A DNA stretch of 64,000 nt, from sequence record MT366760.1; one strand, given 5' to 3'. Position numbers and translations under genes: made by a program. This document shows, one piece after another, positions 8,601 through 49,646 of the stretch. A model generated the notes under the pieces. It was not told where the DNA came from. It did no database searches and worked only from the letters and a program-made list of their open reading frames with translations. Every line of letters starts with the position of its first letter. Position 1 is the first letter of the stretch.

Positions 8601-8611
8601 AAGTTAAAGTC

Positions 8612-10510: not shown

Positions 10511-10552
10511 TTTGTTGCCTTGATGGTTAATGGGTATACCCACCAATTTACA

Positions 10553-11230: not shown

Positions 11231-11309
11231 AGAATATAAACCTATTGGGTATTAACCGATAGTCGGGGTATAGGCTTAGCTGAGAAAGCAGCTAATATCT
11301 CTTTAATCA

Positions 11310-13642: not shown

Positions 13643-13700
13643 ATTTAGCACTCCTTTGAAGTTAGGAAGAGGGGTGATGGTGTACCACCCCTCGTGTTCA

Positions 13701-15050: not shown

Positions 15051-15059
15051 GGTAGCTCC

Positions 15060-18044: not shown

Positions 18045-18474
18045 TTTCGTTATCCTCCCGTTCTACTAACTCTTCAAGATCATTCTCACTTAAGAAGTCT
18101 TTTACGTTTAAAGATTCAACGGGTTTCATCCAAATTGGAACACCGTTACGTTCTCGGTATTGGTAGCTATGCTTACCATCATCATCAGGAATAAACTTAC
18201 CGTGTTTATTCCAGAAGAAGTCAGCGCGTATCTCATCGTTAGAATCAACTACGATAGCATGGGTGACGAATACACTGTTCTTTTCCTTAGAACCCAATAG
18301 GTGTATTGTCTCTGTACCGTCAGCGTATTTGGTCAGATACTTAGCGATAAGTCCGTGGCAGTCTTTGCCGTGCGCGGGTGCCATCGGGTCATTAATACCC
18401 TTAAGCGTATTAACCATGCGCTTCTTCCATGAGTGACCAGTCATAGCTAGAGTGGCAGCGTGTTCTTTTATCAT
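18034..18474 (-). CDS. hypothetical protein (146 aa)
   Basis: Coupled ORF overlapping both neighbours. Confidence 0.65.
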   Translation of the reverse strand: MIKEHAATLAMTGHSWKKRMVNTLKGINDPMAPAHGKDCHGLIAKYLTKYADGTETIHLLGSKEKNSVFVTHAIVVDSNDEIRADFFWNKHGKFIPDDDGKHSYQYRERNGVPIWMKPVESLNVKDFLSENDLEELVEREDNENDT

Positions 18475-19268
18475 AGGAACCCTTCCGACGTTAGCAGTGA
18501 TTTTAAAGTTGTGATTGCGTCATCAACAGAGGAAACTTGACGACCATGTGGGAAAGTTGCAGGAGCACGGAACCCAGGTAATGTGTTAACATAGAATGTA
18601 TCCTTACCAGAGCTGTCCTTAATGTGTGTTGCTACCACACAGTAGTTCTTATACGTGAAACCGGATACGTCTTCAAGACTGCTGAATTCTAAGTATGTTG
18701 TGTAGCGCATACTGGTCTTGTTGTTGGCGTAAACATCAAGTATTTTAGCTTCTGATGTAGTTCGTGCTTTATCGTTAAGAGCAACGTGAGCCATATCGAA
18801 TGTACGTTGAACAAATTCGGAGAAGTCCTGAGTCACATATGATTCGTAGTTGGACTTAAGTAGGGATTTGTATTCGGTCATACGCATTGCGACGTTTGTC
18901 TTGAGTGCCGCAACGTTTGACATGACGGAATCATATAGGTCGTCATCCTTGAATTTGTATTTGACTAGAGACTCAATTGATTCTAGTTGTGACATCAATT
19001 CTTGTAGTGCGGAGAGTCTAGCAAAGTTGTTATCAACTTCACCGATGTCAGGGATGTGTGACCTCCAGTCATAAGTAGGTTGCTCTTCTAGGCTACTTAC
19101 TTCTAGACATTTAGATGCATTTCGCGGGTCAAACGAGTTAGCCAACTCTTCGTCGCTAGCCACCTTATTCAAAATGTTAGATAAGGCAGTGAGTACCTCG
19201 CTTGTATTTCTAAATCGAAATGCATCCAACTTAGAGAACGAAGCTACTTCAATTCGTTTAATACTCAT
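18471..19268 (-). CDS. hypothetical protein
   Basis: Start at 19268 (AAGGA RBS) gives MSIKRIEVAS, the shared N-terminal motif. Confidence 0.7.
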   Translation of the reverse strand: MSIKRIEVASFSKLDAFRFRNTSEVLTALSNILNKVASDEELANSFDPRNASKCLEVSSLEEQPTYDWRSHIPDIGEVDNNFARLSALQELMSQLESIESLVKYKFKDDDLYDSVMSNVAALKTNVAMRMTEYKSLLKSNYESYVTQDFSEFVQRTFDMAHVALNDKARTTSEAKILDVYANNKTSMRYTTYLEFSSLEDVSGFTYKNYCVVATHIKDSSGKDTFYVNTLPGFRAPATFPHGRQVSSVDDAITTLKSLLTSEGFL

Positions 19269-19277
19269 AAGCATTCC

Positions 19278-20342
19278 TTATAGAATGTCGTGTACGTTTT
19301 CTTGTTCATGTACAAGTCTGGTGTTAAGTTCCCAGTTGATTACGGTCTTAGCCGAATCATAGACGGGTGTCATTTCAGTGACTTGCCATATTCTGTTGTA
19401 TTTGTTTTCTTTTACGATACTCCACCGAGGAAGGCTAGGTACATCAGCACCAATGTGCATTTCAGTCTCGCCGTTATCACCAAGTAGATTCTTGGAGAAA
19501 GTTGAGGTTGCGAACTGTGGAAAATCAATGTACGTAACACTATTATTTACAATATAGTTAGCCTCGAAGTGGGTGAACTTACGTGAGGTTGTAATTCGGA
19601 AATTACGAGGAACTCCCGTAGCTAAATCACTAAGGTTAGTTACTGTCACCCAAGAAGTTCCGTCAAACACAAACATCTGATACTCAGCATAAGGTATAGT
19701 GTCGTGATTGTTTCTTAAACGGAACTTAGATATCGTAGCACCAAAAGGTACAACACAAGTAAAGTCAACTGTTGAGGTCTCACCGGATTTAGGAGCGAAA
19801 GCATGTGGAGATACAGTTGAATCCACGGTGAAACCACTACCCATATGCGGTGAAGGTGTGGCTAGCACAAGTCGGTAACCATTAAATAAGTCGTAACCAC
19901 CAACCCAACCGGAGGAATAACACACGGAGCAAGACACAGCACCAAACTCCAAGAAGTCGAAATCCATGTCGTCATCTATCCCATCACCGTCTAAGTCAGA
20001 TTCTACAATGAACCCGTCACTGGTGTTCTCATCACGGTCGAAGTCATCAAAGCTGAACGTTTGACGGTTCGTAACGCCCTGAGTACCTTTGAGTACGGTT
20101 TGGATAGAGTCTTCTGTTAAGTTACCTGATGTATCTAGTAGTTGGGTTTCACCAGAACACGTGCACTCTAAGCCACCAGACTTCCTAATATAAATAGAAG
20201 CGGTTATTTGTCCGGCTTGGAGTGTGTTTAACACCTTTTGCTGTTGTAGTTCGCCATAGAATGGTGTACCCTGAACGGTAGGGTTTACAGCCCTGCGGTT
20301 CATAACATGTAAAGATGTTTTATTCTTCTGAAGTTTAGGCAT
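19278..20342 (-). CDS. probable neck/head-completion protein with Zn-binding motif
   Basis: CTC...CSVCYSSGWVGGY motif; beta-barrel C-terminus (WQVTEM..NWELNTRLV); context. Confidence 0.45.
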   Translation of the reverse strand: MPKLQKNKTSLHVMNRRAVNPTVQGTPFYGELQQQKVLNTLQAGQITASIYIRKSGGLECTCSGETQLLDTSGNLTEDSIQTVLKGTQGVTNRQTFSFDDFDRDENTSDGFIVESDLDGDGIDDDMDFDFLEFGAVSCSVCYSSGWVGGYDLFNGYRLVLATPSPHMGSGFTVDSTVSPHAFAPKSGETSTVDFTCVVPFGATISKFRLRNNHDTIPYAEYQMFVFDGTSWVTVTNLSDLATGVPRNFRITTSRKFTHFEANYIVNNSVTYIDFPQFATSTFSKNLLGDNGETEMHIGADVPSLPRWSIVKENKYNRIWQVTEMTPVYDSAKTVINWELNTRLVHEQENVHDIL

Positions 20343-29546: not shown

Positions 29547-31502
29547 TTAATCCGCTGCAATGCCCAATAGTTTCTTACGGTATTCAGCAGAGCTGCCCAT
29601 AAGTTCGTGTAGTTCGCCAAGCTCACTACGAGACGGTGCATTAATCTTGTAGAGTTTACGTGTCTCAGGGTCGAACGCACATTGACGTAGTGCCAACGCA
29701 GACATTTCACCAAGACCTTTCAAGTAGCTTGGTTTTAATTCAACACCCTTCGGAGCTTGTGCACGTATTTCCTTTACAGTATTTCCGAAGTATAGTGTAC
29801 CTTTATGTTCAGCCATGTACTTAGGCAGGATAGCAATGTACACCATACCACGTGTGAACATTTCTGGTAATAGTTCAGCAATCGTAGTCAGTACAAGCGT
29901 GTTGATGTGCCCACCATCAGGGTCAGCATCGGCAGTCAAGATGAGCTTACCACAACGCAAGTCTTTCATTGGATCTTTAGATGACGGGTTGAAACCAATA
30001 GCCGTAAGGATGTTCAATACTTCTTCCGATTCCCAAACTGCATCGCCTTTACCTTGGTCAATGAGTTTAGCAGCGTTAGCGATTTTACCCTTTAGAGCTA
30101 GTGTCTCTTGATAGCGGTATGGTTTGTTCATACGAGCTGCATCAGCAGTACCACCCGCAGAGTCACCCTCCACTGTGAATATTTCACGTTCGTTAACTGG
30201 ACAGTTCTTAACTTCGGTTAGCTTACCAGGGAGCAATGATTTTTGACCACGCTTAGGTTTGAGCTTAGCAGCAACCTTCTTGTTAAGTGCGAACTTGTTC
30301 TTGATTTCACGTAGCTTAGCTGCACGTTCACAAATCTGTTCAGCAATGTCCTTGTGTTTTCTAAAGTACTTAACTAGATAGTTATAAATTTCGTCGTAAC
30401 ACAGTTCTTCGAAACGAGCGTCGGATAAACGTTCTTTTGTTTGGGATGCAAACTTAGGCGTATCAATCTTAAAGTTGATGACACCGACCAAACCTTCGCG
30501 TAAGTCCATTACGTTGTATTCGTGCTTACCCGCGTATTTCTCAAGGGCTTCGGAAATAGCAATGAACGTTTCTTTTAGATGACTACCACCGTTCGAGTTG
30601 TACAAGGTGTTAGTATAACCTTCCACTTTACACCCATCGGCATCGGAGAATGCCAGTAGCATATCAACGTGCTTGGTGCGAAGCAAGATGTGTTCGTCGA
30701 TAATTGGAGTAGCTTTGTTTTCCTTCAACTTAGCTTGAAGGTATTCGGACATACCGTCCTTGTAGCACAATTCAATCTTGTCGAATTGACCTTTCTTACC
30801 ACCGTGAGTTGGATACTCAAGGATGAATTTAACTTTAGAGTTGAAGTAAGCAGACATCTGAGTCCAGTTACGCAAGTCAGCGAGTGGTAAGTTACTACCT
30901 TTATCAAATTGCTTGAGATCCGGTTTGAACCAAATGATTGTACCCTGTTTAGGAACCTTACTACCCATAGCTTTTTCTAAGTCAGTGATTTCTTTCTTAG
31001 TAGCTACGTGAGTATCGCCCGTCATCTTAGCTTTAGCGTATTGGATTACGTACCACTTCTTATTGCGGAACGTATACACATTGAAGAACTCGGATAGTGC
31101 GTTGGTCGCTTTGATACCTACACCGTGTGTACCACGTGAAGAGTCATAGGCACCCGCATCTTTAAACTTCGCACCACCGTGAATATGTGAGGTTACGATT
31201 TCTAGTGCGGTACGCGGGTCATTCTTAGACGTTTTCTCAACAGGGATACCAGTACCATTGTCAATTACGAAACAGTCGTCTGGGATGAATGCACTACCTT
31301 TGTAGGCTCCCGTTACTTTAATGTGACAAAGGTTGTTACGTCCAACCAATGCTTCATCAACACAGTTATCTGCGGGTTCACGGACGATAGTAAACACACC
31401 ATCAGAAGCGGAACCTCCAACATACATTGATATATTATTCTGAATAATTTCAAGACCAGATAGTGCACGGACGGCACTAGCGTCATAACCTTTTTTAGCC
31501 AT
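29547..31502 (-). CDS. gyrB: type IIA topoisomerase subunit B (GyrB/ParE-like)
   Basis: GHKL motifs (E..DNCVDE, DNGTGIP, GTHGVG), TOPRIM VEGDSAGG, LKGK, DADPDG. Confidence 0.95.
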   Translation of the reverse strand: MAKKGYDASAVRALSGLEIIQNNISMYVGGSASDGVFTIVREPADNCVDEALVGRNNLCHIKVTGAYKGSAFIPDDCFVIDNGTGIPVEKTSKNDPRTALEIVTSHIHGGAKFKDAGAYDSSRGTHGVGIKATNALSEFFNVYTFRNKKWYVIQYAKAKMTGDTHVATKKEITDLEKAMGSKVPKQGTIIWFKPDLKQFDKGSNLPLADLRNWTQMSAYFNSKVKFILEYPTHGGKKGQFDKIELCYKDGMSEYLQAKLKENKATPIIDEHILLRTKHVDMLLAFSDADGCKVEGYTNTLYNSNGGSHLKETFIAISEALEKYAGKHEYNVMDLREGLVGVINFKIDTPKFASQTKERLSDARFEELCYDEIYNYLVKYFRKHKDIAEQICERAAKLREIKNKFALNKKVAAKLKPKRGQKSLLPGKLTEVKNCPVNEREIFTVEGDSAGGTADAARMNKPYRYQETLALKGKIANAAKLIDQGKGDAVWESEEVLNILTAIGFNPSSKDPMKDLRCGKLILTADADPDGGHINTLVLTTIAELLPEMFTRGMVYIAILPKYMAEHKGTLYFGNTVKEIRAQAPKGVELKPSYLKGLGEMSALALRQCAFDPETRKLYKINAPSRSELGELHELMGSSAEYRKKLLGIAAD

Positions 31503-31813
31503 TATTGTGTCCCATTTAATTTTTCGTTAGCCATGTCTCGTATACGCTGTTGTACGAGAGGGTCATATTCGGCTAGTTTAGTATGGATCTTAGCGAGCTT
31601 GTCGCTGTTACTCTCGCGCATTGCATCAGCCAGAGCGTCACTTGCTTTTTCGAAGTCTGTACCCTCAACCACTTGCATGTATTGAGCGGGACATGAATCA
31701 TTACCTTGTTCGTAATGACACTTTTTAAACTTCTTAACACCCAGTTCACCACAGAAGTGTTTGCAGTAGAGACACTTTGGAGAATGAATAACAATTCTAT
31801 CTTTGTCCATCAT
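31502..31813 (-). CDS. small Cys-rich hypothetical protein
   Basis: CLYCKHFC..C..C; GGAG RBS before the ATG at 31813. Confidence 0.6.
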   Translation of the reverse strand: MMDKDRIVIHSPKCLYCKHFCGELGVKKFKKCHYEQGNDSCPAQYMQVVEGTDFEKASDALADAMRESNSDKLAKIHTKLAEYDPLVQQRIRDMANEKLNGTQ

Positions 31814-31839
31814 GTACTCCGATAAAAGGTACAAACGAA

Positions 31840-31871
31840 AAAAGCTGACACAGTTTCCCGCATCAGCTTTT
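31840..31871 (-). terminator. intrinsic terminator
   Basis: AAAAGCTGA/TCAGCTTTT stem with U-tract on the minus strand after 31894..32376. Confidence 0.65.
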
Positions 31872-31893
31872 CTCTATTTAACGAGATCGGGTA

Positions 31894-32376
31894 TTAGTCG
31901 TCCCACTCATCTTTCTTGCCGCCTTTCTTGCCGCCTTTCTTTTCTTTGGCAGGCTTTTTGTCAGCCTTTTTGTCTTTCTTAGCAGCCGCTTTTTTCTTAG
32001 GTGCTGCTTCTTCTTCAACGTCTAGCTCAGTAATTTGTGCTAGTGCTGCAGGTACGTGATGTACTGCGCCGTCTACGTCTGTTGCTACGATGAATTCACC
32101 TTGAACTTCGAACTCTTCGATTTCGATTGAAGTGTATGGAGTCGCTAGTTCTTGAACTGCTACGAAACCTGAGTCAGCATCACCGTTGCCTTCAGTCAAC
32201 ATAAGGATCTGTTGGCTTGGGATGAAACGACGGTCGCGTTTCTGAGTACGTGGACGAGTGTATTCAACCAATGCACCGCCTTCATCGTGCTCAATGATAG
32301 TTAAACCTTTTGGTGCGAAACCATCATCTACTACGTTAGCTACGGTTGACATGTAAACGGTAAGTGTCTTTGACAT
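31894..32376 (-). CDS. hypothetical protein with Lys-rich low-complexity tail
   Basis: GGAG RBS; strong codon bias; KKAAAKKDKK tail. Confidence 0.75.
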   Translation of the reverse strand: MSKTLTVYMSTVANVVDDGFAPKGLTIIEHDEGGALVEYTRPRTQKRDRRFIPSQQILMLTEGNGDADSGFVAVQELATPYTSIEIEEFEVQGEFIVATDVDGAVHHVPAALAQITELDVEEEAAPKKKAAAKKDKKADKKPAKEKKGGKKGGKKDEWDD

Positions 32377-32544
32377 GATATGTCTCCAATTTGTTTTTTA
32401 ATTGAGGGTGTAATCTTTCTGTAGTGGTTGGTCAGTGGGAGCTGATCTTGCTACCCACTTTCCGTTGCACCACTACTTTACATTTTTATTCCAAAAGAAC
32501 TCAAAATTAATTTAAAAGACCTTTTGGAGTACTGATACTACTTA

Positions 32545-32551
32545 TTTACAG
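32545..32551 (-). promoter_or_regulatory. CTGTAAA motif
   Basis: Immediately after the GNAT stop, upstream of the structured leader of 31894..32376. Confidence 0.5.
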
Positions 32552-32553
32552 AT

Positions 32554-33033
32554 TTACTTAGACTTCGATGAACTTTCTTTATAAGTCATCAACCAAGCGT
32601 CACCTTCAGCGTCATACATTGGGCACAAGTGATTCTTAGTAAAGCCAATTGCTTCATAAACACCGATAGCTCTTTCGTTTTTATCGGCGACATAAAGAAC
32701 TGTTAGGGGTGCAAAGGTAATCGCGTATGCAGTAAGTGCGTAACCCAAACCAAGTCCTTCCCAATCTTTATGAATGAATAAGCTTAGTAAGTGAGCACGC
32801 TTCTTCTCTACACGTAGCGTCAACATTGCTACGACTTCACCGAGACCAGTGCGAACCAAGTATAAGTCATCACCCTCTTCAATTGCGTCTTCGAGATAAG
32901 TGATGGAATCGAGTTCGGGGTCTTCACGAAGTGTTCGTAGTTCATGAATATCTTCGCGTGAACGGATAACGTCAACTAAGAAACCATGTTCGTCGTTAGC
33001 GTTACCCAATATTAGAGGAATGGGTTGTTCCAT
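32554..33033 (-). CDS. GNAT acetyltransferase (RimI-like)
   Basis: LFIHKDWEGLGLGYAL (AcCoA motif A), NERAIGVYEAIGF (motif B). Confidence 0.85.
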   Translation of the reverse strand: MEQPIPLILGNANDEHGFLVDVIRSREDIHELRTLREDPELDSITYLEDAIEEGDDLYLVRTGLGEVVAMLTLRVEKKRAHLLSLFIHKDWEGLGLGYALTAYAITFAPLTVLYVADKNERAIGVYEAIGFTKNHLCPMYDAEGDAWLMTYKESSSKSK

Positions 33034-33038
33034 GTGTG

Positions 33039-34187
33039 TTACTCCGCATCTAATAAGAAGGTATGGTCACATTGTTTACCTTCGAAGTTAGTAGCAACTA
33101 GACGTTCATTACCGTTCTCGTCAGTTATTACTTTAGCGTAATCAGGTTGGATAGGCATCTTACCTAAACCACCAATACCATCCAAAATGAATGTAGGCAT
33201 TGCAGGACCTGATATCCAACCGCGCAACTTGTGAATGATTTCAAGAGTGCGATGATAGTTAACTTGAATGTGACTATTACCTGGAGCAGGATCCATAGTG
33301 TATACGTAATAGGGTCTTACACCATGTGACATAAGTTCCATGAATAGTTCTTTCAAGATTACGGGGTCGTCGTTGACACCTTTCCATAGTACGCTTTGGT
33401 TACCAACAGGAATACCGCCACGGGTCAACATTCGAATATGTTTGATGAATAGTGGTGTAATCTCCTTCGGGTGATTTACCTGAATATTAACTAGAGTCAC
33501 ATCGTGCTTGTGCAGGATATCTACTAGCTCTTGGTCAATACGAGTAGGAAGATGTACGGGTAGTCGTGTGCCGATGCGTAGGATCTTTAAGTCTGGACGC
33601 GCTTCACGAATCATACCAAGTATCTTATCCAATTTAGCATTCGGGAACATTAAAGGGTCACCACCGGATAGTAGTACGTCTTCAATGTTCTTGTTTTCAC
33701 GTAACCATTCAACACCGTTACGAATCTGAGTCATATCAATATGAGCATCAGGGTCTAGAACAATACGCTTTCTTGTACAATGACGGCAGAGTGCAGCACA
33801 TATTGTGTTCATAAGGAACAGTACGCGCTGAGGATAACGGTGTGTGATAGAAGTCCCTGGGATTTCCATGTGATGCTCACCTAACTGGTCACCTTCTTCG
33901 TGTGGTGCGATGTGTCGTTCTGCTTCAGTCGGTAGGAACTGTAAGCGGATTGGACAATTAGGGTCATTTTCATCCATCAGTTGAGCAAGGTATGGCGTAA
34001 TTGCCACTTCAGACTCTTGGTAGAATGAATCATCAACACGAGGAACATTATTCATCACTAGCTCTGCGTGTCCGTTTGTTTTAAGTCGGCGGTTATAGAC
34101 CTTTGTCCATGGAGTGTTCTCCACGTCGTAATTCATAAGCTCTTCACGTGTAGCGAAAGGAGCCCCTGTCATTGCAAGTAGTGACAT
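33039..34187 (-). CDS. kamA: lysine 2,3-aminomutase (radical SAM/PLP, KamA/AblA/EpmB family)
   Basis: HRYPQRVL, CAALCRHCTRKR, LLSGGDPL, RIGTR, NQSVLWKGVND, PYYVYTMD, PTFILDGIGGLGK (PLP Lys). Confidence 0.9.
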   Translation of the reverse strand: MSLLAMTGAPFATREELMNYDVENTPWTKVYNRRLKTNGHAELVMNNVPRVDDSFYQESEVAITPYLAQLMDENDPNCPIRLQFLPTEAERHIAPHEEGDQLGEHHMEIPGTSITHRYPQRVLFLMNTICAALCRHCTRKRIVLDPDAHIDMTQIRNGVEWLRENKNIEDVLLSGGDPLMFPNAKLDKILGMIREARPDLKILRIGTRLPVHLPTRIDQELVDILHKHDVTLVNIQVNHPKEITPLFIKHIRMLTRGGIPVGNQSVLWKGVNDDPVILKELFMELMSHGVRPYYVYTMDPAPGNSHIQVNYHRTLEIIHKLRGWISGPAMPTFILDGIGGLGKMPIQPDYAKVITDENGNERLVATNFEGKQCDHTFLLDAE

Positions 34188-34240
34188 TGTTCGTATCCTT
34201 GTTGTGTTAGTGGGGCTGCAATGAGCCCCTTATTATCAAT

Positions 34241-36334
34241 TTACAATAATAGTAGTTTAGGTGCAAACTCGTGATTGTGGTCGAATAGCATACCAATATG
34301 AGGTTCTTCACGGAACGCACCGTACAACACGTTCTGTTGACGTGCTACGTGGATGGCTAGAACGTAAGCATCTTGTGGTGAAGTGTCTGAGTAACCTTGA
34401 CCGATACCGTAACGGGTGTTCGAATCTGCGATTGCGTAGTCAGCACCACAGAATGAAGCAGCATCAATCAAGTCGAAACCACAATCGTCTTCGGAGAAGT
34501 AGTTGAATAGTGATCTTGTTACACAGTAGTCTGCTTCACCACCACCGCAAAGCGGTACGGTATAGATAGACACACCACATGAGAAGCGAGCACGCCATTC
34601 AGGGTCGATGTGTTTCTTAGCTTCTAAGTGTTCGAGTACTACGGGTAATGGACGACCCATCTGACGGGTTAGTGTTGAGTTGTTTGAACAACCCATTCTG
34701 ACCATCCATTCAGTGAAGTAAGGAACGTCATCAACTACCATAAAGCTTGCGTCAATCCAACCGAACAGACCATCTACTTCTTTGTGAAGTGAACGCATCT
34801 TCTCGGCTAGTTCTTCTACGATTGGATAGTTTTGAATCTTGGTATCGTGCAGCGTTGTAGTATCGCCACCTTTACCACCCGTGTCATTGTGCATCAGCTT
34901 ATTAACTTCCCACAAGATACACATTGGTTGTACGTGGTCTTCGTTAATCAGGAAGCTAACGTTGAATTCGTTGTCTCCGCGACCTAGATATTGTTCGATG
35001 AATAGCGCACCACCATTCAAGAGGTTTGGTAATGTTAATTCGAAACCATCTTTATCGAAAATATCAATGAAGTGAGTCTTCAGATATTTAACTGCGATCT
35101 TATCCGTTGGGATACGGTCTTTTTTCGCGTGCCAATCTTCTAGGGACTTGACGACGATTGATGCGGGTACGTTAAAACCAATTGCTTCTGCACATTTGTG
35201 ACCGAATACACGGTTACGTTCCAACGCACGGGCGTCCTGAGTATGGAAGTGAGTCAGGTAGTCGAGTAACGGTGGTACAATTTCTTCGTTGTAGCCCAAC
35301 GTTGAGAAGTATTGACCGCGTTCGTAATCACCTACACGTTCCATCAGCTCGATGAATTCAGGGTCATCAAAGTCTACACAGTTAGGTAGTTCTGATGGTT
35401 CGATGTCGGGGAACAACTCACGTAGTTGGTGCATGTTAACTTGAGGAATGGTAACTAGTTGTACGTCAGCAATACCTTCTGAGGTATTACAATTGTAACG
35501 TGTTGCACTAGTACCACCTGAACCTTCTTCTATTCGAAGGTGGACAATTTTATCGCAGTTGATACCGTCTTCTACCAATAGGCGAGCCTGAGCGATGTAA
35601 TCGTATTGCTTGCGTAGTCGAAGTTTCGGCATGTTCTGGGGTTCACTACGTTCATTAACTTCTGCGTTACCAAGAGGCATCATGAAGTCAACGTATTCAC
35701 GGGAATCTAGACCTTGCCAAATATCAACCCATTCCTGAGTGTCATAAATAGGTCGGGATAGCTTGTAACCCGCAAGTACGAAGTTACTTTGATCTTCGTC
35801 ACTTAAATTAGCAAAGAACAACGTAAACATCCCATCATCTTTTTCAACATGTGCCACATGTGAGATATGTGATGTGAGCATCGGTACAAGTTTGGTCTGC
35901 GCAAATGGAATTGAAGGATACGTTGCTTCATCACGTAGCCCTTGGAGTGTGATAAAGTCAGCAGGTTCCATTGGTCGTAGGTTGTAGAGTGGTGAACCAC
36001 TAGACCAACCAGATATCATTTGCTGCGACTCGTAAATAATAGGGTCACCTGAGTGAACGGTGTAGGGTGCCAGACGTTGTTGGTAGATAGTCGGAAAGTC
36101 TGGGATTGTTGATACCCCACCGAATTGTGCAAAGTGGACTACGCAATCTGATAGCCCATTGTTGTAGATCAAAGTTGTAGGGAACTGAGCTAGGTAGTCC
36201 GATAGCAGTGGGATAAAATAATCACCTCTGACGTAACGACCAGGACTGCTCAAGTAATTCGCTGTTGTCACACGTTTGCCTGTGAAGTCTAATTTCTTCA
36301 CCATGTCAAATAGTGGGTTTAATAATGATTTCAT
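34241..36334 (-). CDS. PurD-like ATP-grasp amide ligase with ~330 aa unknown N-terminal region
   Basis: LERNRVFGH, IAVK, FIEQYLG, EVNKLMHNDTGGKGG, FTEWMVRMG parallel the PurD ATP-grasp motifs. Start moved to 36334 (GAGG RBS). Confidence 0.7.
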   Translation of the reverse strand: MKSLLNPLFDMVKKLDFTGKRVTTANYLSSPGRYVRGDYFIPLLSDYLAQFPTTLIYNNGLSDCVVHFAQFGGVSTIPDFPTIYQQRLAPYTVHSGDPIIYESQQMISGWSSGSPLYNLRPMEPADFITLQGLRDEATYPSIPFAQTKLVPMLTSHISHVAHVEKDDGMFTLFFANLSDEDQSNFVLAGYKLSRPIYDTQEWVDIWQGLDSREYVDFMMPLGNAEVNERSEPQNMPKLRLRKQYDYIAQARLLVEDGINCDKIVHLRIEEGSGGTSATRYNCNTSEGIADVQLVTIPQVNMHQLRELFPDIEPSELPNCVDFDDPEFIELMERVGDYERGQYFSTLGYNEEIVPPLLDYLTHFHTQDARALERNRVFGHKCAEAIGFNVPASIVVKSLEDWHAKKDRIPTDKIAVKYLKTHFIDIFDKDGFELTLPNLLNGGALFIEQYLGRGDNEFNVSFLINEDHVQPMCILWEVNKLMHNDTGGKGGDTTTLHDTKIQNYPIVEELAEKMRSLHKEVDGLFGWIDASFMVVDDVPYFTEWMVRMGCSNNSTLTRQMGRPLPVVLEHLEAKKHIDPEWRARFSCGVSIYTVPLCGGGEADYCVTRSLFNYFSEDDCGFDLIDAASFCGADYAIADSNTRYGIGQGYSDTSPQDAYVLAIHVARQQNVLYGAFREEPHIGMLFDHNHEFAPKLLLL

Positions 36335-36336
36335 AA

Positions 36337-37479
36337 TTATGCCTCGTCGCCTAATACTACGACACTTTCTGGAAGTTCCCAACCGTTTTTCTCTGAGTAG
36401 AGCGGTGGTGTTAAGTAACCTGGGTTTTCACGACACACACAGATTGTCGTGTTCGTGTTATTGTCATTTACAATAAGGCGCTTGTATGTCTCGATACTTT
36501 CACCACCTGACACATTGGTACGGCAAGTTGGGTCAAGATAAAGCACTGGATGTTTTGAGTCTTCAATGTAGTACTTGACCATACTACCTAGCATTAGTGC
36601 GCCTACATTGTGGTGTGACTTATCACGAACATTAGCTTGGAAGAACGCGGTTACTTCTTTGTTTTCCGGATTGAAACGATTGACGAAGGAACCAATGGAA
36701 ATGATTTCATTAGTTTCTTTGTCAGTTACCACACAGAACTGAGTAGTACCCTTAGGCATATTGACGACACATGCCCACGCCCACATGGATTGGAGTAGAG
36801 CGTATTCGAATTCTAAGTAATCGGGGTACGACTTACGTAGTAGTTCGATGGTGCGTTCTTGAAGCGTACGTATATCTAGGAAACCACCACCATTGTATGA
36901 ATGAAGGTTACCGTGGAAGTATTCATCAAAGATATCTACGTGGTATCGGTCTTGGTTAAGTGCTTGACGAACTTTGTAACGGCGCTTCTTAGTCAAGGAT
37001 GCTAGGTACTCGTCGAATGTCTCGTGGTTTAAATTAGCCACGGGACTATTCAACCAAAGTAAGTTCTCTGATTTGTATTCGTGTGCATCAGATAACGTCA
37101 CTGTCTCTGTTGATAGCATGTTGTAGCCGTGAGAACCAAGTACTTCGAGTAGTGCTTTGCATGATTCTTCACAAACCAAGTCAGCTTGTGTGTAAGGTAA
37201 ATATGGATGACATAACACGTGTGATAGTGGTAGTTCCCATTCGGAGTCTTTACGTTCAGTACTGTGGACGAATGGACTAGGATTAAAACCCAAACCCGCT
37301 AAACGTCCCTCAGTAATCATAGTAATAGGAGTGTTAAGGGTAGCACCACAATTGAATTGACGTAGGTACGTGTCAAATGTGGAAATAACTTCACTGTTAA
37401 GTTCTGGAGTAAGTGTTGAGGAATAACCATGAAGTTTACACCAGTTGTATAGGTATTCTGTTATTGATACTGTTTTCAT
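36337..37479 (-). CDS. FemAB-like / Acetyltransf_6 GNAT-fold acyl- or aminoacyl-transferase
   Basis: TFDEYLASLTKKRRYKVRQAL signature; VGALMLGSMVKY. Confidence 0.65.
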   Translation of the reverse strand: MKTVSITEYLYNWCKLHGYSSTLTPELNSEVISTFDTYLRQFNCGATLNTPITMITEGRLAGLGFNPSPFVHSTERKDSEWELPLSHVLCHPYLPYTQADLVCEESCKALLEVLGSHGYNMLSTETVTLSDAHEYKSENLLWLNSPVANLNHETFDEYLASLTKKRRYKVRQALNQDRYHVDIFDEYFHGNLHSYNGGGFLDIRTLQERTIELLRKSYPDYLEFEYALLQSMWAWACVVNMPKGTTQFCVVTDKETNEIISIGSFVNRFNPENKEVTAFFQANVRDKSHHNVGALMLGSMVKYYIEDSKHPVLYLDPTCRTNVSGGESIETYKRLIVNDNNTNTTICVCRENPGYLTPPLYSEKNGWELPESVVVLGDEA

Positions 37480-37487
37480 TTTTAGTC

Positions 37488-38510
37488 CTATAGTGAAGTA
37501 CGGTCTTTGTTGTAACCGTGGTCACAAGCTTCAGGGATTAAGTCAAGTAGTTGTTGTGGGATGTCATTGTTGAATTGAATACCCTTATGGTATTTCTCCT
37601 CTTCACACCACATGCGCTTCCAATCATAGTAACCTACACCAAAGTTGTAGTATTTACAACCAAGTGCCTTAGCCAATAAGTATCCGTGGTAGAGTAGTAC
37701 GTTACCAATGTTGTTACCGACAGTACGGCGCGAGAAGTCCCAGTATAATTCTTCACCATTATCAGTTACGGAAAATACGGCGAGACCTGAACAGTCGCCT
37801 AGGTCAATTTCAGCAGTTATCCAACGGTCGAAATTGAATCCAGTGAAGAAGTTTAGGAAAAGTAATTGATCTTCGGATACTGTGTGATGTTTACCCGTAC
37901 TTTCCCAATACTTAAGGAAGTCTTCTTTGTAGCGTTCACAATCTGCGGCAATTTCATCAGTGTGATGTGGATGAGATACTTCTACACCTGCATTACGTAA
38001 TGTCGTAACGTCTACGGCATTGTACGCCTTGTTGATAATTGGTAATTGTGGGGTTTCAACAAGCTTCTTGAATGGGCGGTAGAAGCGTTTTAGGTTTTTC
38101 TCTTCAACGTTCATACGTAATGTCATCAGACCATGGTCGTGAGTAGACATTCCGAATTCTTCTAGGTTGAAACCTTTTGTCCAAAAGTTAACGTAGTCGT
38201 CAGCGGAGGACGATTCCCCCATGATGATTGTAATGAATTTAGTCTTGTCGTGCTCTATTTCATCACGAACAATCTGAATAGGCATTACGTTGTTATGGGA
38301 ATCACGCAGGAACACGGGTTCCGTACATCGGTAGTATTTAGAACCTTCGATTTCTTCGGCAGTTAGATAATAAAGACCACTATAACTAGGAATCTTCATA
38401 CCGCCTAAAGAATCAGTGCCGAGTTTATTAGTGTACCATTGTTGATCTACAACGTGACCGAAAGGTTCTTCAGCAATGTCACCATGTTTATTCATTACTT
38501 TAACTAACAT
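37488..38510 (-). CDS. second FemAB-like / Acetyltransf_6 GNAT-fold transferase
   Basis: IGNVLLYHGYLLAKALGCKYYNFGVGYYDWKRMW C-terminal signature. Confidence 0.6.
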   Translation of the reverse strand: MLVKVMNKHGDIAEEPFGHVVDQQWYTNKLGTDSLGGMKIPSYSGLYYLTAEEIEGSKYYRCTEPVFLRDSHNNVMPIQIVRDEIEHDKTKFITIIMGESSSADDYVNFWTKGFNLEEFGMSTHDHGLMTLRMNVEEKNLKRFYRPFKKLVETPQLPIINKAYNAVDVTTLRNAGVEVSHPHHTDEIAADCERYKEDFLKYWESTGKHHTVSEDQLLFLNFFTGFNFDRWITAEIDLGDCSGLAVFSVTDNGEELYWDFSRRTVGNNIGNVLLYHGYLLAKALGCKYYNFGVGYYDWKRMWCEEEKYHKGIQFNNDIPQQLLDLIPEACDHGYNKDRTSL

Positions 38511-39204
38511 TGTCTAACGCTCCCTGACTGTCCGTGCATTGTGAACAAATACCACAAGGTGGGTAGAACTCACAACTAATACGGTTTGAATAATCTTCAC
38601 CAAATGTACGACCTAGTGCAACTACTTGTTCTTTTGACATGTGCATTAGGGGTGTATCAATGACGAATGGTTTAGAGAACGATTGGAATAACAGTTCGTT
38701 CATCGTCTTAACGAAGTGAGGATTAATATCTGCACCGCGAGTTGCACCATTGGTACGAGTACCTACATCTAACTCAGGGTCATTTAGCTGAATACCAAAC
38801 GTCAGTTTATTACAACCTGCGTAGATTGCTTCGATTGATGCTTGTAGGAGGAATGCAGCATTACGACCTTCCAACCAAAACCAGTCAGGATGCTCAGCTA
38901 GTGAGTCACAATCTTCAGTTAGAGAATCACGGGAGAAACCTTGCTTTGGTTTGTACCCTTCATGGAAGACACCGAAGTCTGAGATATCGTGTCCGTTGCG
39001 TACCATGATTTCAGGATACGCAACTTCTAAGACGCGAGTAGAACAACCCCAGAAGTGTGCATAGTACTCCATGATGCGTTGTTGTTCTTCAAATACAGCT
39101 TGTCCATAGTTAACGAGGATAAGCATTTTAAGTTTGCCAGTGGCATTGATTAGGTGACCCGCGACGATGCTGTCAATCCCACCTGAGAATAATAGTGCGT
39201 TCAT
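38500..39204 (-). CDS. divergent QueC-like PP-loop ATP pyrophosphatase
   Basis: LLFSGGIDS, NYGQ, EGRNAAFL, TPLMHMSKEQVV, C-x5-CGICSQC; lacks the YPDC motif. Confidence 0.8.
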   Translation of the reverse strand: MNALLFSGGIDSIVAGHLINATGKLKMLILVNYGQAVFEEQQRIMEYYAHFWGCSTRVLEVAYPEIMVRNGHDISDFGVFHEGYKPKQGFSRDSLTEDCDSLAEHPDWFWLEGRNAAFLLQASIEAIYAGCNKLTFGIQLNDPELDVGTRTNGATRGADINPHFVKTMNELLFQSFSKPFVIDTPLMHMSKEQVVALGRTFGEDYSNRISCEFYPPCGICSQCTDSQGALDNVS

Positions 39205-39234
39205 TATAGTGCTCCTTTAGTTCACTATATTTAT

Positions 39235-39241
39235 TTTACAG
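39235..39241 (-). promoter_or_regulatory. CTGTAAA motif
   Basis: Directly after the queC terminator, 31 nt before the QueC-like ATG (AAGGAG RBS). Confidence 0.55.
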
Positions 39242-39244
39242 AAT

Positions 39245-39273
39245 AAAAATGGGCAGCAAGAGCCACCCATTTT
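39245..39273 (-). terminator. intrinsic terminator after queC
   Basis: AAAATGGGTGGC-TCTT-GCTGCCCATTTTT on the minus strand. Confidence 0.65.
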
Positions 39274-39283
39274 AAATTAGCGT

Positions 39284-40090
39284 TTAGCAGTCTTCTGGAC
39301 TAACGAATTCACTGTCAGACCCACCTTCAACTACCCACTGGTAGCGAGCACGTGCAGGGTCATCAATACCCGCTTCATCAAAACCACGCTTACGTAACAA
39401 GCAGCTATGACAAGAGCCACAACCTAGAACAACGTTACCGTTTTCACCACGAGTGAAATCTTTGCCGTTGTAACAGGTATGGGTAAAGCTGATAGCTTCC
39501 ATACATTCATCACCTAGCTCTTGTGCAAGTTCGACAGTAGCCTTCTTAGACAAGTGCATTAGTGGGGTTGTGATTTTAATCAAGTGATCTTCACCGAAGT
39601 CTTCTTCAAGGAACAATGCTGCATTAGTAGCTGCCTGTAACTTGTCGATGAAAACTTGGCGGCAATCTGGGTAACCACCGAAATCTTCTTCACAAACACC
39701 GGTAACAATGTGACGCAGACGATGTACGTAAGCACGGTTGCTAGCAATCGTAAGGAATACTAAGTTACGTGATGGAACAAATGTATTTTCCAAACCACCA
39801 GGGAGTGAGTCAGCATCTGCATATTGCTCAACCTTTTCGTTGCGGTTAGTCAGTGGGCTTGTACCCTGTAGGATATCGTGACCCAAAGCGATGATCTCAA
39901 ACGGAACTTGCGCACGGTCTGCAATTTTACGAGCCAATATTGTTTCAGTGATATGGCGTTGACCATAGTTGAAACAGATAGCACGAACGTTCTCACGACC
40001 ATATTCACGAATTGCCCAATGTAGACAAGTCGTTGAGTCTTGTCCGCCTGATAGTACAACGACTGCACCTTCTTTCATTTCATTGCTCAT
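39284..40090 (-). CDS. queC: 7-cyano-7-deazaguanine (preQ0) synthase
   Basis: VVVLSGGQDSTTCL, FNYGQRH, TFVPSRN, GGYPDCR, PLMHLSK, THTCYNG, GCGSCHSCLLRKRGF. Confidence 0.95.
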   Translation of the reverse strand: MSNEMKEGAVVVLSGGQDSTTCLHWAIREYGRENVRAICFNYGQRHITETILARKIADRAQVPFEIIALGHDILQGTSPLTNRNEKVEQYADADSLPGGLENTFVPSRNLVFLTIASNRAYVHRLRHIVTGVCEEDFGGYPDCRQVFIDKLQAATNAALFLEEDFGEDHLIKITTPLMHLSKKATVELAQELGDECMEAISFTHTCYNGKDFTRGENGNVVLGCGSCHSCLLRKRGFDEAGIDDPARARYQWVVEGGSDSEFVSPEDC

Positions 40091-40101
40091 TTTGTATTCC
40101 C

Positions 40102-41109
40102 TTACTGTTCGATGTGGCTTAGGTCGTCTTCTTCGTCTTCTTCATCTTCTTCGCGGATTTCAAGTAACGCGTTACGGAGTGAACAGATTAGAGACGTGCT
40201 GCTTAGATTTAGGTAGTCTGAATAGAACTTAACTTCATTCACGAACTTAACCTGTGGAATGATACCGCCTGCCCATAGGTTGTTATGTGTTAGTTCGTCA
40301 AACGCTGCTTTAATCGCTAGGTTATAGAAGTCACAGTAAACAACAATAGTATCATGTTCATGTTTAGAGAAGTAATCAACAAAGGTCTTTTTCAGACGCC
40401 ATTCGTACGGGATACCCGAATCATAGTGTGGCATAATAGCCCAAAGATCTTGAGGTACGATACCCAGTACGCCAGTCGCATTCGCAATGTAAGTATCTGA
40501 AGAACAACCAGTTGCTTCAAGGCAGTCAATAACTGCTGAGTGCATTGGTGCAGGGTACGGTTTGTCGGGTGCGCATGGAACAAGAACCAAATTACGTTTG
40601 GTTGGTGTATAATCGTCAAGAGTTTCGAAGTAATCCAAAACTTCTTTACGATGGAATGAACCATTGTTAGTAATGATGAACTCTTTACGCTCATGTTGTA
40701 GGTTCTTAGTGAGTTGTGGAAGTTTGGTCTCCCACTGCATATCACTTTTCCATAGTGCGTCCACCAACTCTGGGCGGAATCCACACACAACTTCGATAGA
40801 GGTACGGTCTAGGAATGGATAACGGCAGAACTGAGTTGACTTGTCTACGTTAAGTAAACGAGAAACTTGTTCGTCGTGCTCAAAGTGAACTTGAGGTGTA
40901 CTACAATCCGCACCTAAATAGTTAAGTAGTGGAACCCAAGAAGCGGGTGGTCGAGTAACCGTCCACGGCTCCGAAGACTCTGCTACCACTTTGAAGATAT
41001 CTAGGTATGAACCATAGCGATCTTCGTATCGACCACCCGATGGCATTTGGGATAAGTCGATGTGACGGTCTTCTTTATCAATGACCGTTTCTGAGGAGTT
41101 TACTGTCAT
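40102..41109 (-). CDS. archaeosine synthase ArcS/TgtA2 core (DUF5591)-like protein
   Basis: RKEVLDYF..YTPTKRNLVLVPCAPDKPY..H and GVLGIVPQDL..PHYD match the recalled ArcS core motifs PCSxxKPY and LGLVPREL..HYD. Confidence 0.7.
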   Translation of the reverse strand: MTVNSSETVIDKEDRHIDLSQMPSGGRYEDRYGSYLDIFKVVAESSEPWTVTRPPASWVPLLNYLGADCSTPQVHFEHDEQVSRLLNVDKSTQFCRYPFLDRTSIEVVCGFRPELVDALWKSDMQWETKLPQLTKNLQHERKEFIITNNGSFHRKEVLDYFETLDDYTPTKRNLVLVPCAPDKPYPAPMHSAVIDCLEATGCSSDTYIANATGVLGIVPQDLWAIMPHYDSGIPYEWRLKKTFVDYFSKHEHDTIVVYCDFYNLAIKAAFDELTHNNLWAGGIIPQVKFVNEVKFYSDYLNLSSTSLICSLRNALLEIREEDEEDEEDDLSHIEQ

Positions 41110-41160
41110 AGTAGTGTTTTCCTATAGTGGTATTTTGGTGGGTGGAATTACCCACCGCAA

Positions 41161-42483
41161 TTAGTTTACAGAATAATGTGAGTATGTTTCTTCCCACGCT
41201 AAAAATTTATTTATTCCCCTTAGAAATAGTATTACGGTGATGTCACCGATACCTTTCTTATTCATAAGCCTATTATACATCTGACCACGTGTAAGGGAAG
41301 CGGGTTCATCACCTAGGTCTTTGAATATCTGAGTGAGTTTAGCGGGTGGGATGGTAGCTCCCTCTTGTGTGACGAAAGCACCAGACACAAGTGCACGCTG
41401 TGTTAATGTCAGCCTTCTAACTGAGTTTTGGAGTGCGTTGTAGAGTATACGAATTGTCGTAGTACCAAAGCCGTTTAGCTTAGCTAAGTCTTCTTCGGTG
41501 GCATCCATTAAAGCAAAGATGTCACTATATTTACGTGATATTTCACTAACCTTGGCATCAGAAATGTTACGTATCGAAAGCACGGAGGATAGTGCGTAAT
41601 TTAAATGGGCTTTTTTCCTACCGTCACAGTCTAAGTTATAGCAGAACAGTCGATGGTCATCTTCAAATATGTCACCACGGCACGACGGACACTTCTTAAG
41701 ATTCTCGGTTGCGTGTGGTGAGTGATATACCTTTTCTATTGACGGTGGTAAGTTCTTAGGTTTGTTAACGTTCAGCATGATTGCTGTACCAACACCAACA
41801 CCAAGGTCATGAAGCACCTTGCATGATTGCAGTGGTATGTTGCTGTAGGACGTATGATTAGTCGTCAGCTTTTCTATTTCCAAGGTTGGTCGGATTTCAC
41901 CAGTACGCTGAACCTTATAACGAATGTGGGTTACGACAGTTACTAGATGTGTCTTATCTTTCTTCTTCCAGTACCAATAGAAATTACCATTAGCGACGAC
42001 CACACCCTTGCGTGCTTTGACGTTCACCAATACATCTTTTAGTTTTGAACTGGAAACGGAACAACGCAGGGGTGATAAATGGTCAGCGGGGATGAAGCCA
42101 TCCTTAACTGCTGAAAGTTCATTACTATGCAGGAATATGAAGTCAGTATCTCCAGATTTCAAACCGCGCATAACCTCTTTAGGTTTAGAAGCACTTATCG
42201 GGTTCACTATCTGAGTAGTTAGGATTCCCAACACTTGTCCTTTTGGATGCGCAATGCGGTTGGGGATAAGACCGTTATCAACTATTCTATGGAAGTCTAT
42301 GGCTTTGAGTCTATTGTATTTCTTGTGGTCGTAAGCTATCCAAGCACCAATAGGTGTGTGTGCTTCATACACCACTTTAATAGGTACACCGCTCAACCCA
42401 GGATATACATGATAATGAACCACCTTAGACTTTTCTAATTCGCGTTGGTGGTTCTTATTGAATTTCTTAATTTGAGAGTTCAT
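41161..42483 (-). CDS. catalytically degenerate NAD-ligase paralogue (OB fold, C4 Zn finger, HhH)
   Basis: VQRTGEIRP, CPSC..FCYN.DC, HhH GFGTTT; KxDG region reads PGLSGVP. Start moved to 42483 (GGAGG RBS). Confidence 0.7.
   Translation of the reverse strand: MNSQIKKFNKNHQRELEKSKVVHYHVYPGLSGVPIKVVYEAHTPIGAWIAYDHKKYNRLKAIDFHRIVDNGLIPNRIAHPKGQVLGILTTQIVNPISASKPKEVMRGLKSGDTDFIFLHSNELSAVKDGFIPADHLSPLRCSVSSSKLKDVLVNVKARKGVVVANGNFYWYWKKKDKTHLVTVVTHIRYKVQRTGEIRPTLEIEKLTTNHTSYSNIPLQSCKVLHDLGVGVGTAIMLNVNKPKNLPPSIEKVYHSPHATENLKKCPSCRGDIFEDDHRLFCYNLDCDGRKKAHLNYALSSVLSIRNISDAKVSEISRKYSDIFALMDATEEDLAKLNGFGTTTIRILYNALQNSVRRLTLTQRALVSGAFVTQEGATIPPAKLTQIFKDLGDEPASLTRGQMYNRLMNKKGIGDITVILFLRGINKFLAWEETYSHYSVN
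41165..41171 (-). promoter_or_regulatory. CTGTAAA motif
   Basis: In the last codons of 41161..42483, 56 nt before the ArcS-like ATG. Confidence 0.45.
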
Positions 42484-42922
42484 GGAATACTTCCTCCCAT
42501 GTCCCGACGTTACCACGATGGATAAGTACACCTAGACGGAATTCAAGTGTTGCACGTTCCAAGTCTTGGCGGATTAGTTCTTCTATGTTCATACCATCAG
42601 GTAGTCTACGGTTGACGACTTCAACGTCTAAGTCTTCTTCGACAGCTTTCCACATAAAGTAGGATGCTAGGAAGTTGCGAACCAATGTAGGTCGGGTATG
42701 TGTTGTGAAAGTAGACTTAGGCTTCATTAAGTCTCGGGCTTTACTGAGGTACTGCGGAAGTAGCTTACCGGCTACATGTAATTTGTCACGGTCTGTATTG
42801 ACCAATGCTTCTAGGAAACCGAAGTCTCCTTCATCCGCTAGCTTTTCAACTAACGAGATATCAACTGTTGACTTTACATAGGTGAAAGTTTCCTCAGCAA
42901 GAGCGACTATGGTTTTGTCCAT
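42467..42922 (-). CDS. hypothetical protein
   Basis: AGGA RBS; CTGTAAA at 42974-42980 upstream. Confidence 0.65.
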   Translation of the reverse strand: MDKTIVALAEETFTYVKSTVDISLVEKLADEGDFGFLEALVNTDRDKLHVAGKLLPQYLSKARDLMKPKSTFTTHTRPTLVRNFLASYFMWKAVEEDLDVEVVNRRLPDGMNIEELIRQDLERATLEFRLGVLIHRGNVGTWEEVFHELSN

Positions 42923-49561: not shown

Positions 49562-49646
49562 GGTGTGGTAGTTCAACTGGATAGAACAGCAGGGTGCACC
49601 GTTAACAGACTGCCAGTTATTGGTTCAAAGCCAATCCACACCACCA
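49562..49646 (+). tRNA. tRNA-like gene (85 nt) with an 8-nt-expanded anticodon loop; identity uncertain
   Basis: Acceptor GGTGTGG/CCACACC + A + CCA; D arm GTTC/GAAC; T arm ATTGG-TTCAAAG-CCAAT; anticodon stem GCAG/CTGC. Confidence 0.8.

Follow-up and report, generated by a model that had tools for sequence, protein, structure and literature searches.

Conserved embedding of a KamA-family lysine 2,3-aminomutase gene in a 7-deazaguanine module of Vibrio phage vB_VcorM_GR7B and other phages

We analyzed a 64,000-nucleotide stretch (the window) of Vibrio phage vB_VcorM_GR7B (GR7B; MT366760.1), a 207,758-bp myovirus that infects Vibrio coralliilyticus and originates from oyster-hatchery seawater, and in particular the gene GR7B_00113, which the record already annotates as lysine 2,3-aminomutase. 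The encoded KamA-family enzyme is an ordinary one; what we did not find described in the literature searched is its conserved embedding in a phage 7-deazaguanine module together with a PurD-like ATP-grasp protein and QueC paralogues. Results showed that KamA lies beside amide-forming enzymes and 7-deazaguanine genes in at least 10 phage lineages. From sequence comparison we consider it probable that GR7B_00113 produces free beta-lysine, which would serve as the building block of a 7-deazaguanine conjugated to an amino acid. The original prediction had listed the supply of beta-lysine to an adjacent pathway as one option among several, and this option has the best support. All positions are window positions, obtained by subtracting 62000 from the record positions, and window 31000-42000 matched the GR7B record with 100% identity by megablast.

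The open reading frame (ORF) of GR7B_00113 is uninterrupted, begins with ATG and has a ribosome-binding site AAGGA 9 nt upstream. It encodes a cluster motif C130-x3-C134-x2-C137 followed by T-R139 (CAALCRHCTRKR), D299 within YTMD, D336 within FILD and K343 within GGLGK, the last being the lysine that holds pyridoxal phosphate (PLP). The only solved relative, the KamA of C. subterminale (PDB 2A5H), was matched by phmmer with E=1e-73, query residues 59-371 aligning to residues 55-361 of the chain. In this alignment C130, C134 and C137 fall on the cluster cysteines of CSMYCRHCTRRR, while D299, D336 and K343 correspond to D293 in YIYQCD, D330 in FVVD and K337 in GGGGK, respectively. R139 aligns to the 2A5H Arg placed directly after C-T, which we take to be R134 in KamA numbering, the residue that binds the alpha-carboxylate. 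When nine relatives, six from phages and three from bacteria, are aligned, the catalytic residues (Cys, Arg, both Asp and the PLP Lys) show no variation, in agreement with the earlier description of a phage lysine 2,3-aminomutase having CxxxCxxC, the PLP lysine and both lysine-type Asp residues.

Family models gave a consistent picture. GR7B_00113 matched Radical_SAM (PF04055; 3e-11) and LAM_C (PF12544; 6e-8) above the Pfam cut-offs and passed the NCBIfam KamA-family model TIGR00238 with 231.8 bits versus a cut-off of 199.2, scores by which the match reflects homology rather than chance. Among the NCBIfam equivalog models the AblA/lysine model TIGR03820 ranked first (316.7), followed by the glutamate model TIGR04368 (280.7), the arginine and AblA-like-2 models (about 254 each) and EpmB (193.4), every one of them scoring below its own cut-off (525.4 for TIGR03820, 650 for TIGR04368 and 369.3 for EpmB). 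The AblA/lysine model was likewise the best for 6 further cluster-linked phage KamA copies. By family, residues and placement, GR7B_00113 is a lysine-type 2,3-aminomutase, with catalysis predicted.

Two other substrates were considered and rejected. Glutamate aminomutases (Eam) have Lys/Asn at the two positions that contact the epsilon-amine of lysine, where GR7B_00113 has Asp at both, and TIGR04368 gave 280.7 against the required 650. Arginine aminomutase was ruled out by residues and model scores.

We also compared KamA between GR7B and phage GR11A. The nonsynonymous divergence (dN) was 0.10, the synonymous divergence (dS) was saturated and amino acid identity was 86%. Across the block, the two phages share 92% identity in a divergent QueC paralogue, 60% in topoisomerase II and 54% in the small GNAT that follows KamA, so that KamA and the divergent QueC are the best-conserved genes of the block. 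The KamA gene is under strong purifying selection. The possibility of a pseudogene was discarded, considering this selection and the intact ORF.

The nearest relatives of GR7B_00113, with 58-61% identity, are the KamA proteins of Shewanella, Ferrimonas and Psychromonas, of about 397 aa; in operons of the Shewanella/Ferrimonas type the order is MarR, KamA, Na-solute symporter and GNAT, and the GNATs pass the AblB equivalog TIGR03827 (302 and 305 versus 205). At 49% identity stand the KamA of Undibacterium, Ideonella and Accumulibacter, which have the same length and belong to kamA-kdd-kamD-kamE-kce lysine-fermentation clusters. We built two trees rooted on EpmB, one of 110 rows and a careful version of 54 rows, the outgroup being Salmonella and Acinetobacter sequences that each adjoin efp. 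In these trees the marine-gammaproteobacterial ablA clade is the sister group (96/86) of the window KamA and its GR11A orthologue, which lie within a 100/100 clade of 33 rows that comprises ablA-operon and betaproteobacterial lysine-fermentation KamA. A phylogeny against KamA, AblA and EpmB had been proposed as a check, and the result places the phage enzyme away from EpmB. GR7B_00113 shares with clostridial 2A5H and the fermentation enzymes the fold and family, CxxxCxxC, the PLP Lys, the carboxylate Arg and both epsilon-amine Asp, with a 49%-identity KamA in its own clade; unlike them it is virus-encoded and has neighbors that are not catabolic (no Kdd or Kce), and it is shorter than the clostridial enzyme by the C-terminal ~55 residues.

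Other cluster-linked phage copies of KamA fall elsewhere in the trees. The KamA of the Pseudomonas putida phages groups with Lysobacter (65% identity; 97/92), that of contig L099 with betaproteobacterial fermentation KamA (100/96), and that of contig L101 with a Myxococcales enzyme in another major clade (100/100). Monophyly of phage KamA was rejected by the approximately unbiased (AU) test with p=2.7e-4 for 3 rows and 1.2e-24 for 7 rows, for groups that were named after inspection of the tree. The phage KamA genes are thus placed as polyphyletic, a pattern suggesting that phages have captured ordinary enzymes of host type more than once. Considering this polyphyly, the generic activity, conversion of free L-lysine to beta-lysine, would be the simplest need of the slot that KamA occupies. 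It is a clean case in which a viral pathway retains the slot of a metabolic enzyme but refills it, time and again, with copies of host type.

The same module was found, by tblastn and contig look-ups, in GR11A, in nine P. putida phages (vB_PpuM-Aura and relatives; 51% identity), in the IMG/VR contigs L005, L099, L100 and L101, and in the metagenome contigs L165, L171 and L172, which were reached through the ATP-grasp family. The cluster comparison covers 13 loci, and ArcS2 counts are out of the 10 cluster loci with KamA. This ATP-grasp belongs to a small family: from 1.84 billion representatives an exhaustive profile search retrieved 26 clusters at E<=1e-30. The PurD-like ATP-grasp is encoded on 10 contigs of 10 kb or longer, and every one of them also carries KamA, within about 6 kb; the 3 ATP-grasp contigs devoid of KamA are each shorter than 5 kb. 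Nine of the 13 loci contain QueC-family genes, interleaved with other module genes. The ArcS2-like gene was detected in the window, GR11A and L100 (3 of 10); L101 and L165 do not reach the upstream end, beyond ATP-grasp, where it would lie. A TGT-like gene adjoins the module in L005 and lies within the same 21-kb locus in L101, and in 6 of the 13 loci the module adjoins topoisomerase II, among replication genes. Of 80 bacterial KamA loci, not one carried any partner gene of the phage module. Further searches with ATP-grasp gave nothing in a scan of viral contigs with the back-translated alignment and the GR11A copy alone in a word-based protein search, and Pfam gave no match for 20 unassigned cluster proteins of the other phages.

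Contig L171 (SRR29134027, a phage-like Logan contig of 30.7 kb) extends the module in an informative way. Its gene order is QueC, an unassigned gene, KamA, GNAT, ATP-grasp, a second unassigned gene and lysine 5,6-aminomutase, the set from KamA to the 5,6-aminomutase lying at 8513-15377. The alpha subunit of the latter scored 608 versus an equivalog cut-off of 600 and is 47% identical to Undibacterium KamD, and the beta (B12-binding) subunit scored 206 versus a cut-off of 280. By these matches, the L171 phage should carry lysine on to 3,5-diaminohexanoate, and the presence of this enzyme therefore argues for free-amino-acid chemistry. A B12-dependent aminomutase in a phage is unusual by itself.

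We also looked at the 7-deazaguanine genes of the GR7B genome. These encode FolE (PF01227; 1e-52), QueD-like and QueE-like (radical-SAM) proteins with weak matches, and a TGT-domain protein (TgtA model 4.5e-11, TGT superfamily 7e-5) that is 52% identical to its counterpart in all the P. putida phages. Genes of the preQ0 pathway and a TGT/DpdA-family protein co-occur in this genome, and by gene content GR7B is a 7-deazaguanine phage of the kind described in PMC6884629 and PMC10516641. Eight 7-deazaguanine derivatives are known from phage DNA, all having a small C7 substituent (PMC10516641), and both papers describe ArcS2, without any aminomutase. Compared with the known phage systems (DpdA, FolE/QueD/QueE/QueC, ArcS2, Gat-QueC, QueF and DpdL/M/N), GR7B has in common FolE, QueC, the ArcS2-like and the TGT-domain proteins, the weakly matching QueD-like and QueE-like proteins, and QueC-family genes interleaved in the module; unlike GR7B, the described systems lack a lysine aminomutase, a PurD-like ATP-grasp and FemAB-like genes. 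Our literature search on KamA or beta-lysine with deazaguanine found nothing relevant, nor a paper linking the two. Outside the window, a 324-aa GR7B protein gives a weak QueD/PTPS match, and the genome also encodes the anaerobic ribonucleotide reductase NrdDG, fitting oxygen-sensitive radical-SAM chemistry during infection.

The sequences show the family, catalytic residues and placement of the enzyme and the linkage of its gene. The mechanism that we infer goes further, to the activity of the enzyme, the use of beta-lysine by its neighbors, the identity of the product and its incorporation into DNA, and its steps, given here in no set order, are derived from gene content. With its [4Fe-4S] cluster, S-adenosylmethionine (SAM) and PLP, KamA would shift the alpha-amino group to C3 of free L-lysine, yielding beta-lysine (3,6-diaminohexanoate). 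The PurD-like ligase would use this product, as suggested by the strict co-occurrence of ATP-grasp and KamA; PurD activates the carboxylate of an amino acid as an acyl phosphate and couples it to an amine. In a first route, a QueC-like enzyme or the ATP-grasp could form an amide of beta-lysine on 7-carboxy-7-deazaguanine, and the divergent QueC paralogue is a candidate ATP-dependent amidoligase on this compound. The QueC-like Cap9 ligates 7-carboxy-7-deazaguanine to the primary amine of a protein N-terminus (bioRxiv 10.1101/2025.04.06.647259). In a second route, where the ArcS2-like lysine/ammonia transferase is present, the epsilon-amine would be added to the preQ0 nitrile to give an amidine; archaeal ArcS attaches lysine to preQ0 in this way (PMC11298593). 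Free amino groups may be extended or capped (N-acetylated) by the possibly FemAB-like proteins and by the GNAT, and the TGT/DpdA-like enzyme would insert the base into phage DNA, where it would block host nucleases.

A broader proposal, which we advance tentatively, is that these phages may swap some guanines for a 7-deazaguanine bearing beta-lysine (3,5-diaminohexanoate in L171), perhaps aminoacylated or acetylated, a kind of DNA hypermodification that would be new, built by a portable module of QueC-like amidoligases, the PurD-like ATP-grasp and the captured lysine aminomutase. If this is true, the purine would carry a bulky, cationic and extendable group, comparable to the amino-acid and polyamine hypermodifications of thymidine, with possible effects on how the phages evade restriction enzymes and CRISPR nucleases. 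Phages of Vibrio and Pseudomonas share this compact module with several uncultured lineages, and it can be recognised by a PurD-like ATP-grasp that always accompanies KamA and QueC paralogues.

Several observations weigh against a role of KamA in a deazaguanine pathway, or against parts of it. The 7-deazaguanine link consists of gene order alone, and in phages the early-gene regions hold many genes of nucleotide metabolism that have no relation to one another. The ArcS2 of phage nt-1 by itself yields dG+ in E. coli (PMC10516641), therefore the deazaguanine genes could function independently of the amino-acid genes. A further ~60 viral KamA loci (L102-L164; 35-41% identical, many on contigs longer than 100 kb) have no module genes and each has its own small conserved neighbors, meaning that phage KamA has at least one other use besides the module; the neighbors in these loci gave no functional clue, and one group lies near a SET-domain protein (L138). 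In addition, the four unassigned gene families that fill different phage clusters had no detectable mutual relation by hhalign, and the FemAB-like labels of the 340-aa and 380-aa proteins are weak, coming from ESM Atlas alone, with model confidence (predicted local distance difference test, pLDDT) of ~0.5-0.6 and without sequence-profile support. As for the enzyme, it failed the AblA equivalog cut-off (316.7 versus 525.4) and lacks the C-terminal ~55 residues of clostridial KamA, the stretch that holds the zinc site of that enzyme. The AblA model gives 323-332 bits for KamA of true ablAB operons and 326 for the lysine-fermentation KamA, and as context-validated proteobacterial KamA score 323-332, the failure of TIGR03820 is clade-wide and not phage-specific. 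The C-terminal stretch is likewise absent in the context-validated proteobacterial KamA that we compared.

The alternative that survives best, which we nonetheless judge unlikely, is that the output of the module is not DNA but a free peptidyl-deazapurine small molecule, made in the manner of peptidyl-nucleoside antibiotics (aminomutase, ATP-grasp ligase and tRNA-dependent aminoacyl transferase), or a deazaguanylated or beta-lysylated protein as in Cap9/QatC. The amide-ligase content of the module is akin to the natural-product logic of the blasticidin and streptothricin pathways. QueC-like enzymes do join 7-carboxy-7-deazaguanine to protein N-termini (10.1101/2025.04.06.647259; PMC13279940), the L171 QueC-like gene gives a weak QatC match, and in GR7B, as in those systems, a divergent QueC with PP-loop and Zn site adjoins genes supplying the amine substrate. 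The Cap9/QatC systems, however, are bacterial defenses acting on a protein N-terminus, whereas the module is phage-encoded and its proposed amine is a free diamino acid. Moreover, a TGT/DpdA-like enzyme is encoded, at or close to the module in L005 and L101, the cluster begins in two lineages with a LigA-like DNA-binding protein, and the replication genes and topoisomerase II are its frequent neighbors. The known phage deazaguanine systems all modify DNA (PMC6884629, PMC10516641).

The original prediction had also proposed that the enzyme was repurposed as a RaSEA-like radical enzyme acting on preQ0-Lys. In this scheme ArcS2 would attach L-lysine to preQ0 (as base, nucleotide or DNA), and KamA, taking the place of RaSEA as radical-SAM partner, would isomerise the tethered lysyl group to a beta-lysyl adduct or help to cleave it to dG+. 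The window indeed has an ArcS-core homologue with PC-x3-KPY five genes upstream of KamA, so that a lysine-handling radical-SAM enzyme and ArcS2 stand in one same-strand block with preQ0 genes, an arrangement also having its ArcS2-like gene in L100. The archaeal ArcS makes preQ0-Lys and requires a radical-SAM partner (PMC11298593). Such preQ0-Lys would keep its alpha-amino and alpha-carboxyl groups free, and its cationic epsilon amidinium could still bind both Asp. On the contrary, the ArcS2-like gene was detected in only 3 of 10 KamA loci, with the reservation given above for L101 and L165, and the protein has no tRNA-binding PUA domain. The phage KamA are interleaved with bacterial free-lysine enzymes, with the same length and no extra domain, and nothing in these generic enzymes departs from the free-lysine type. 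In NCBIfam at E<=0.01, GR7B_00113 hit the KamA-family, NrdG and FxsB models alone; its NCBIfam/PDB similarity is confined to KamA-family models, and by this comparison the PLP-dependent enzyme is a KamA and not a RaSEA homologue. The partner of KamA in L171, lysine 5,6-aminomutase, acts on a free amino acid. KamA chemistry takes place at C2/C3, while RaSEA cleaves the epsilon C-N bond. We therefore consider the RaSEA-like role, with these points against it, as distinctly improbable.

Another alternative is an osmolyte module, in which KamA and the GNAT would make N-acetyl-beta-lysine in the infected marine host independently of the deazaguanine genes. The closest cellular relatives of the phage enzyme are marine gammaproteobacterial ablA genes of ablA-transporter-ablB operons, and an acetyltransferase gene follows the phage KamA as well: its ORF begins exactly 5 nt (CACAC) past the KamA TAA stop, the spacing that had been noted before, with GGAG within the last KamA codons. 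Considering the short spacer and this GGAG in the KamA 3' end, the GNAT is probably translationally coupled to KamA, and a second, independent KamA-GNAT adjacency is found in L171. The reading of this pair as an ablAB-like order did not hold. Neither the 159-aa GNAT nor its GR11A orthologue matched the AblB model TIGR03827, whereas the GNATs of bacterial neighborhoods score 238-313 versus a cut-off of 205, and BLASTP against Shewanella AblB gave E=0.14, that is, no similarity to the AblB proteins of 290-323 aa. A captured ablAB unit was ruled out, the phage GNAT being unrelated to AblB. No transporter is present, and the GNAT is limited to GR7B and GR11A, with an analogous GNAT in L171, being absent from the P. 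putida phages and from most metagenomic versions of the cluster. In these river-water P. putida phages, as in most other versions, KamA persists in the absence of the GNAT but always together with ATP-grasp. The osmolyte role, also raised in the original prediction, is in our view very unlikely; if the product were merely beta-lysine or its acetyl derivative, the finding would shrink to an ordinary auxiliary metabolic gene.

The last alternative, an EpmB-like supply of (R)-beta-lysine for host EF-P that would boost translation during infection, had also been suggested and is effectively refuted by placement and context, leaving it a negligible chance: GR7B_00113 belongs to the same superfamily and is short at the C-terminus like EpmB, but it has 33% identity with Salmonella EpmB over 72% of the query and ~32% with Acinetobacter EpmB, both trees put EpmB far away as the outgroup (stem length 2.3-2.9) and the EpmB model gave the lowest score (193.4 versus 369.3), tblastn with Salmonella EpmA (GenX) and EF-P against the whole GR7B genome found none (E>1), and the host is expected to have its own EpmB.

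The genes around GR7B_00113 are listed in Table 1. All genes from 42531 down to 27988 lie on the minus strand, and the block runs in the order LigA-like, ArcS2-like, QueC, divergent QueC, 340-aa protein, 380-aa protein, ATP-grasp, KamA, GNAT, two small conserved genes and topoisomerase II.

Table 1. Features of the KamA block, in window coordinates
Feature	Position	Strand	Basis
LigA-like protein with OB-fold and helix-hairpin-helix DNA-binding parts	41161..42531	-	annotated 'DNA ligase' (GR7B_00120)
ArcS2-like protein, DUF5591 core; PC-x3-KPY as PCAPDKPY, remaining motif degenerate	40102..41109	-	Pfam/NCBIfam
Canonical QueC (preQ0 synthase), 268 aa; 185 versus NCBIfam equivalog cut-off 150	39284..40090	-	NCBIfam
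Divergent QueC paralogue, 234 aa; QueC 63 bits, SGGxDS PP-loop and four Zn cysteines kept	38500..39204	-	Pfam/NCBIfam
340-aa protein, possibly FemAB/Acetyltransf_6-like, low confidence	37488..38510	-	ESM Atlas
380-aa protein, possibly FemAB/Acetyltransf_6-like (tandem GNAT fold, aminoacyl-transferase type), low confidence	36337..37479	-	ESM Atlas
697-aa protein; residues ~240-697 PurD-like ATP-grasp amide ligase, N-terminal domain of ~240 aa unassigned	34241..36334	-	ESM Atlas; PDB profile
KamA-family lysine 2,3-aminomutase (predicted), 382 aa, radical SAM [4Fe-4S] + PLP type	33039..34187	-	motifs, Pfam/NCBIfam, 2A5H alignment, trees
Small GNAT N-acetyltransferase, 159 aa	32554..33033	-	Acetyltransf_1 6e-11
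160-aa protein, no assigned function, shared by the Vibrio and P. putida phages downstream of the cluster	31894..32376	-	
102-aa protein, no assigned function, kept between the cluster and topoisomerase II in several lineages	31502..31810	-	

The profile of the ATP-grasp family matches PDB structures of PurD (phosphoribosylamine-glycine ligase) with E=1.9e-22, and the AlphaFold model of the 697-aa protein has a pLDDT of 61, with residues 16-240 below 50. The AlphaFold model of the 380-aa protein has a pLDDT of 62, and the profile of the 340/380-aa proteins gave no meaningful match to PDB sequences. The LigA-like GR7B_00120 heads the cluster in the Vibrio and the P. putida phages. Its match to NAD-ligase is limited to residues 196-370, the adenylation domain is not recognisable and the 195-aa N-terminus has no match, while a full-length ligase, GR7B_00085, is encoded elsewhere in the window. 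GR7B_00120 may be a DNA-binding accessory of the modification cluster.

Some minor features were noticed near the module in other phages. In L005 a protein with Intein_splicing and homing-endonuclease parts lies just past KamA (11165-12580), and in L171 the topoisomerase II subunits at 16908-19759 have intein/Hint domains. On the short metagenomic contig L167 (3270-4145) a protein with a weak Amidoligase_2 match lies between a two-domain ATP-grasp and a QueC-family fragment, an order which hints at further amide-forming variants of the module.

In GR7B itself, Rfam at gathering thresholds found nothing across the window, and scans for promoters and terminators gave no informative signal. The 53-nt gap between ATP-grasp and KamA contains a perfect 6-bp GC-rich hairpin, GGGGCT..AGCCCC, at 34212-34229, without a T-run on the minus strand, that could be a processing or attenuation signal. 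Outside the window the genome also encodes an acyl carrier protein and a polyphosphate kinase. Finally, ARAGORN reported a tRNA-like gene at 49562-49646 on the plus strand ('tRNA-???', anticodon 'tg', with an abnormal anticodon loop), which sits in a gap of ~800 bp past the RNase HI gene.

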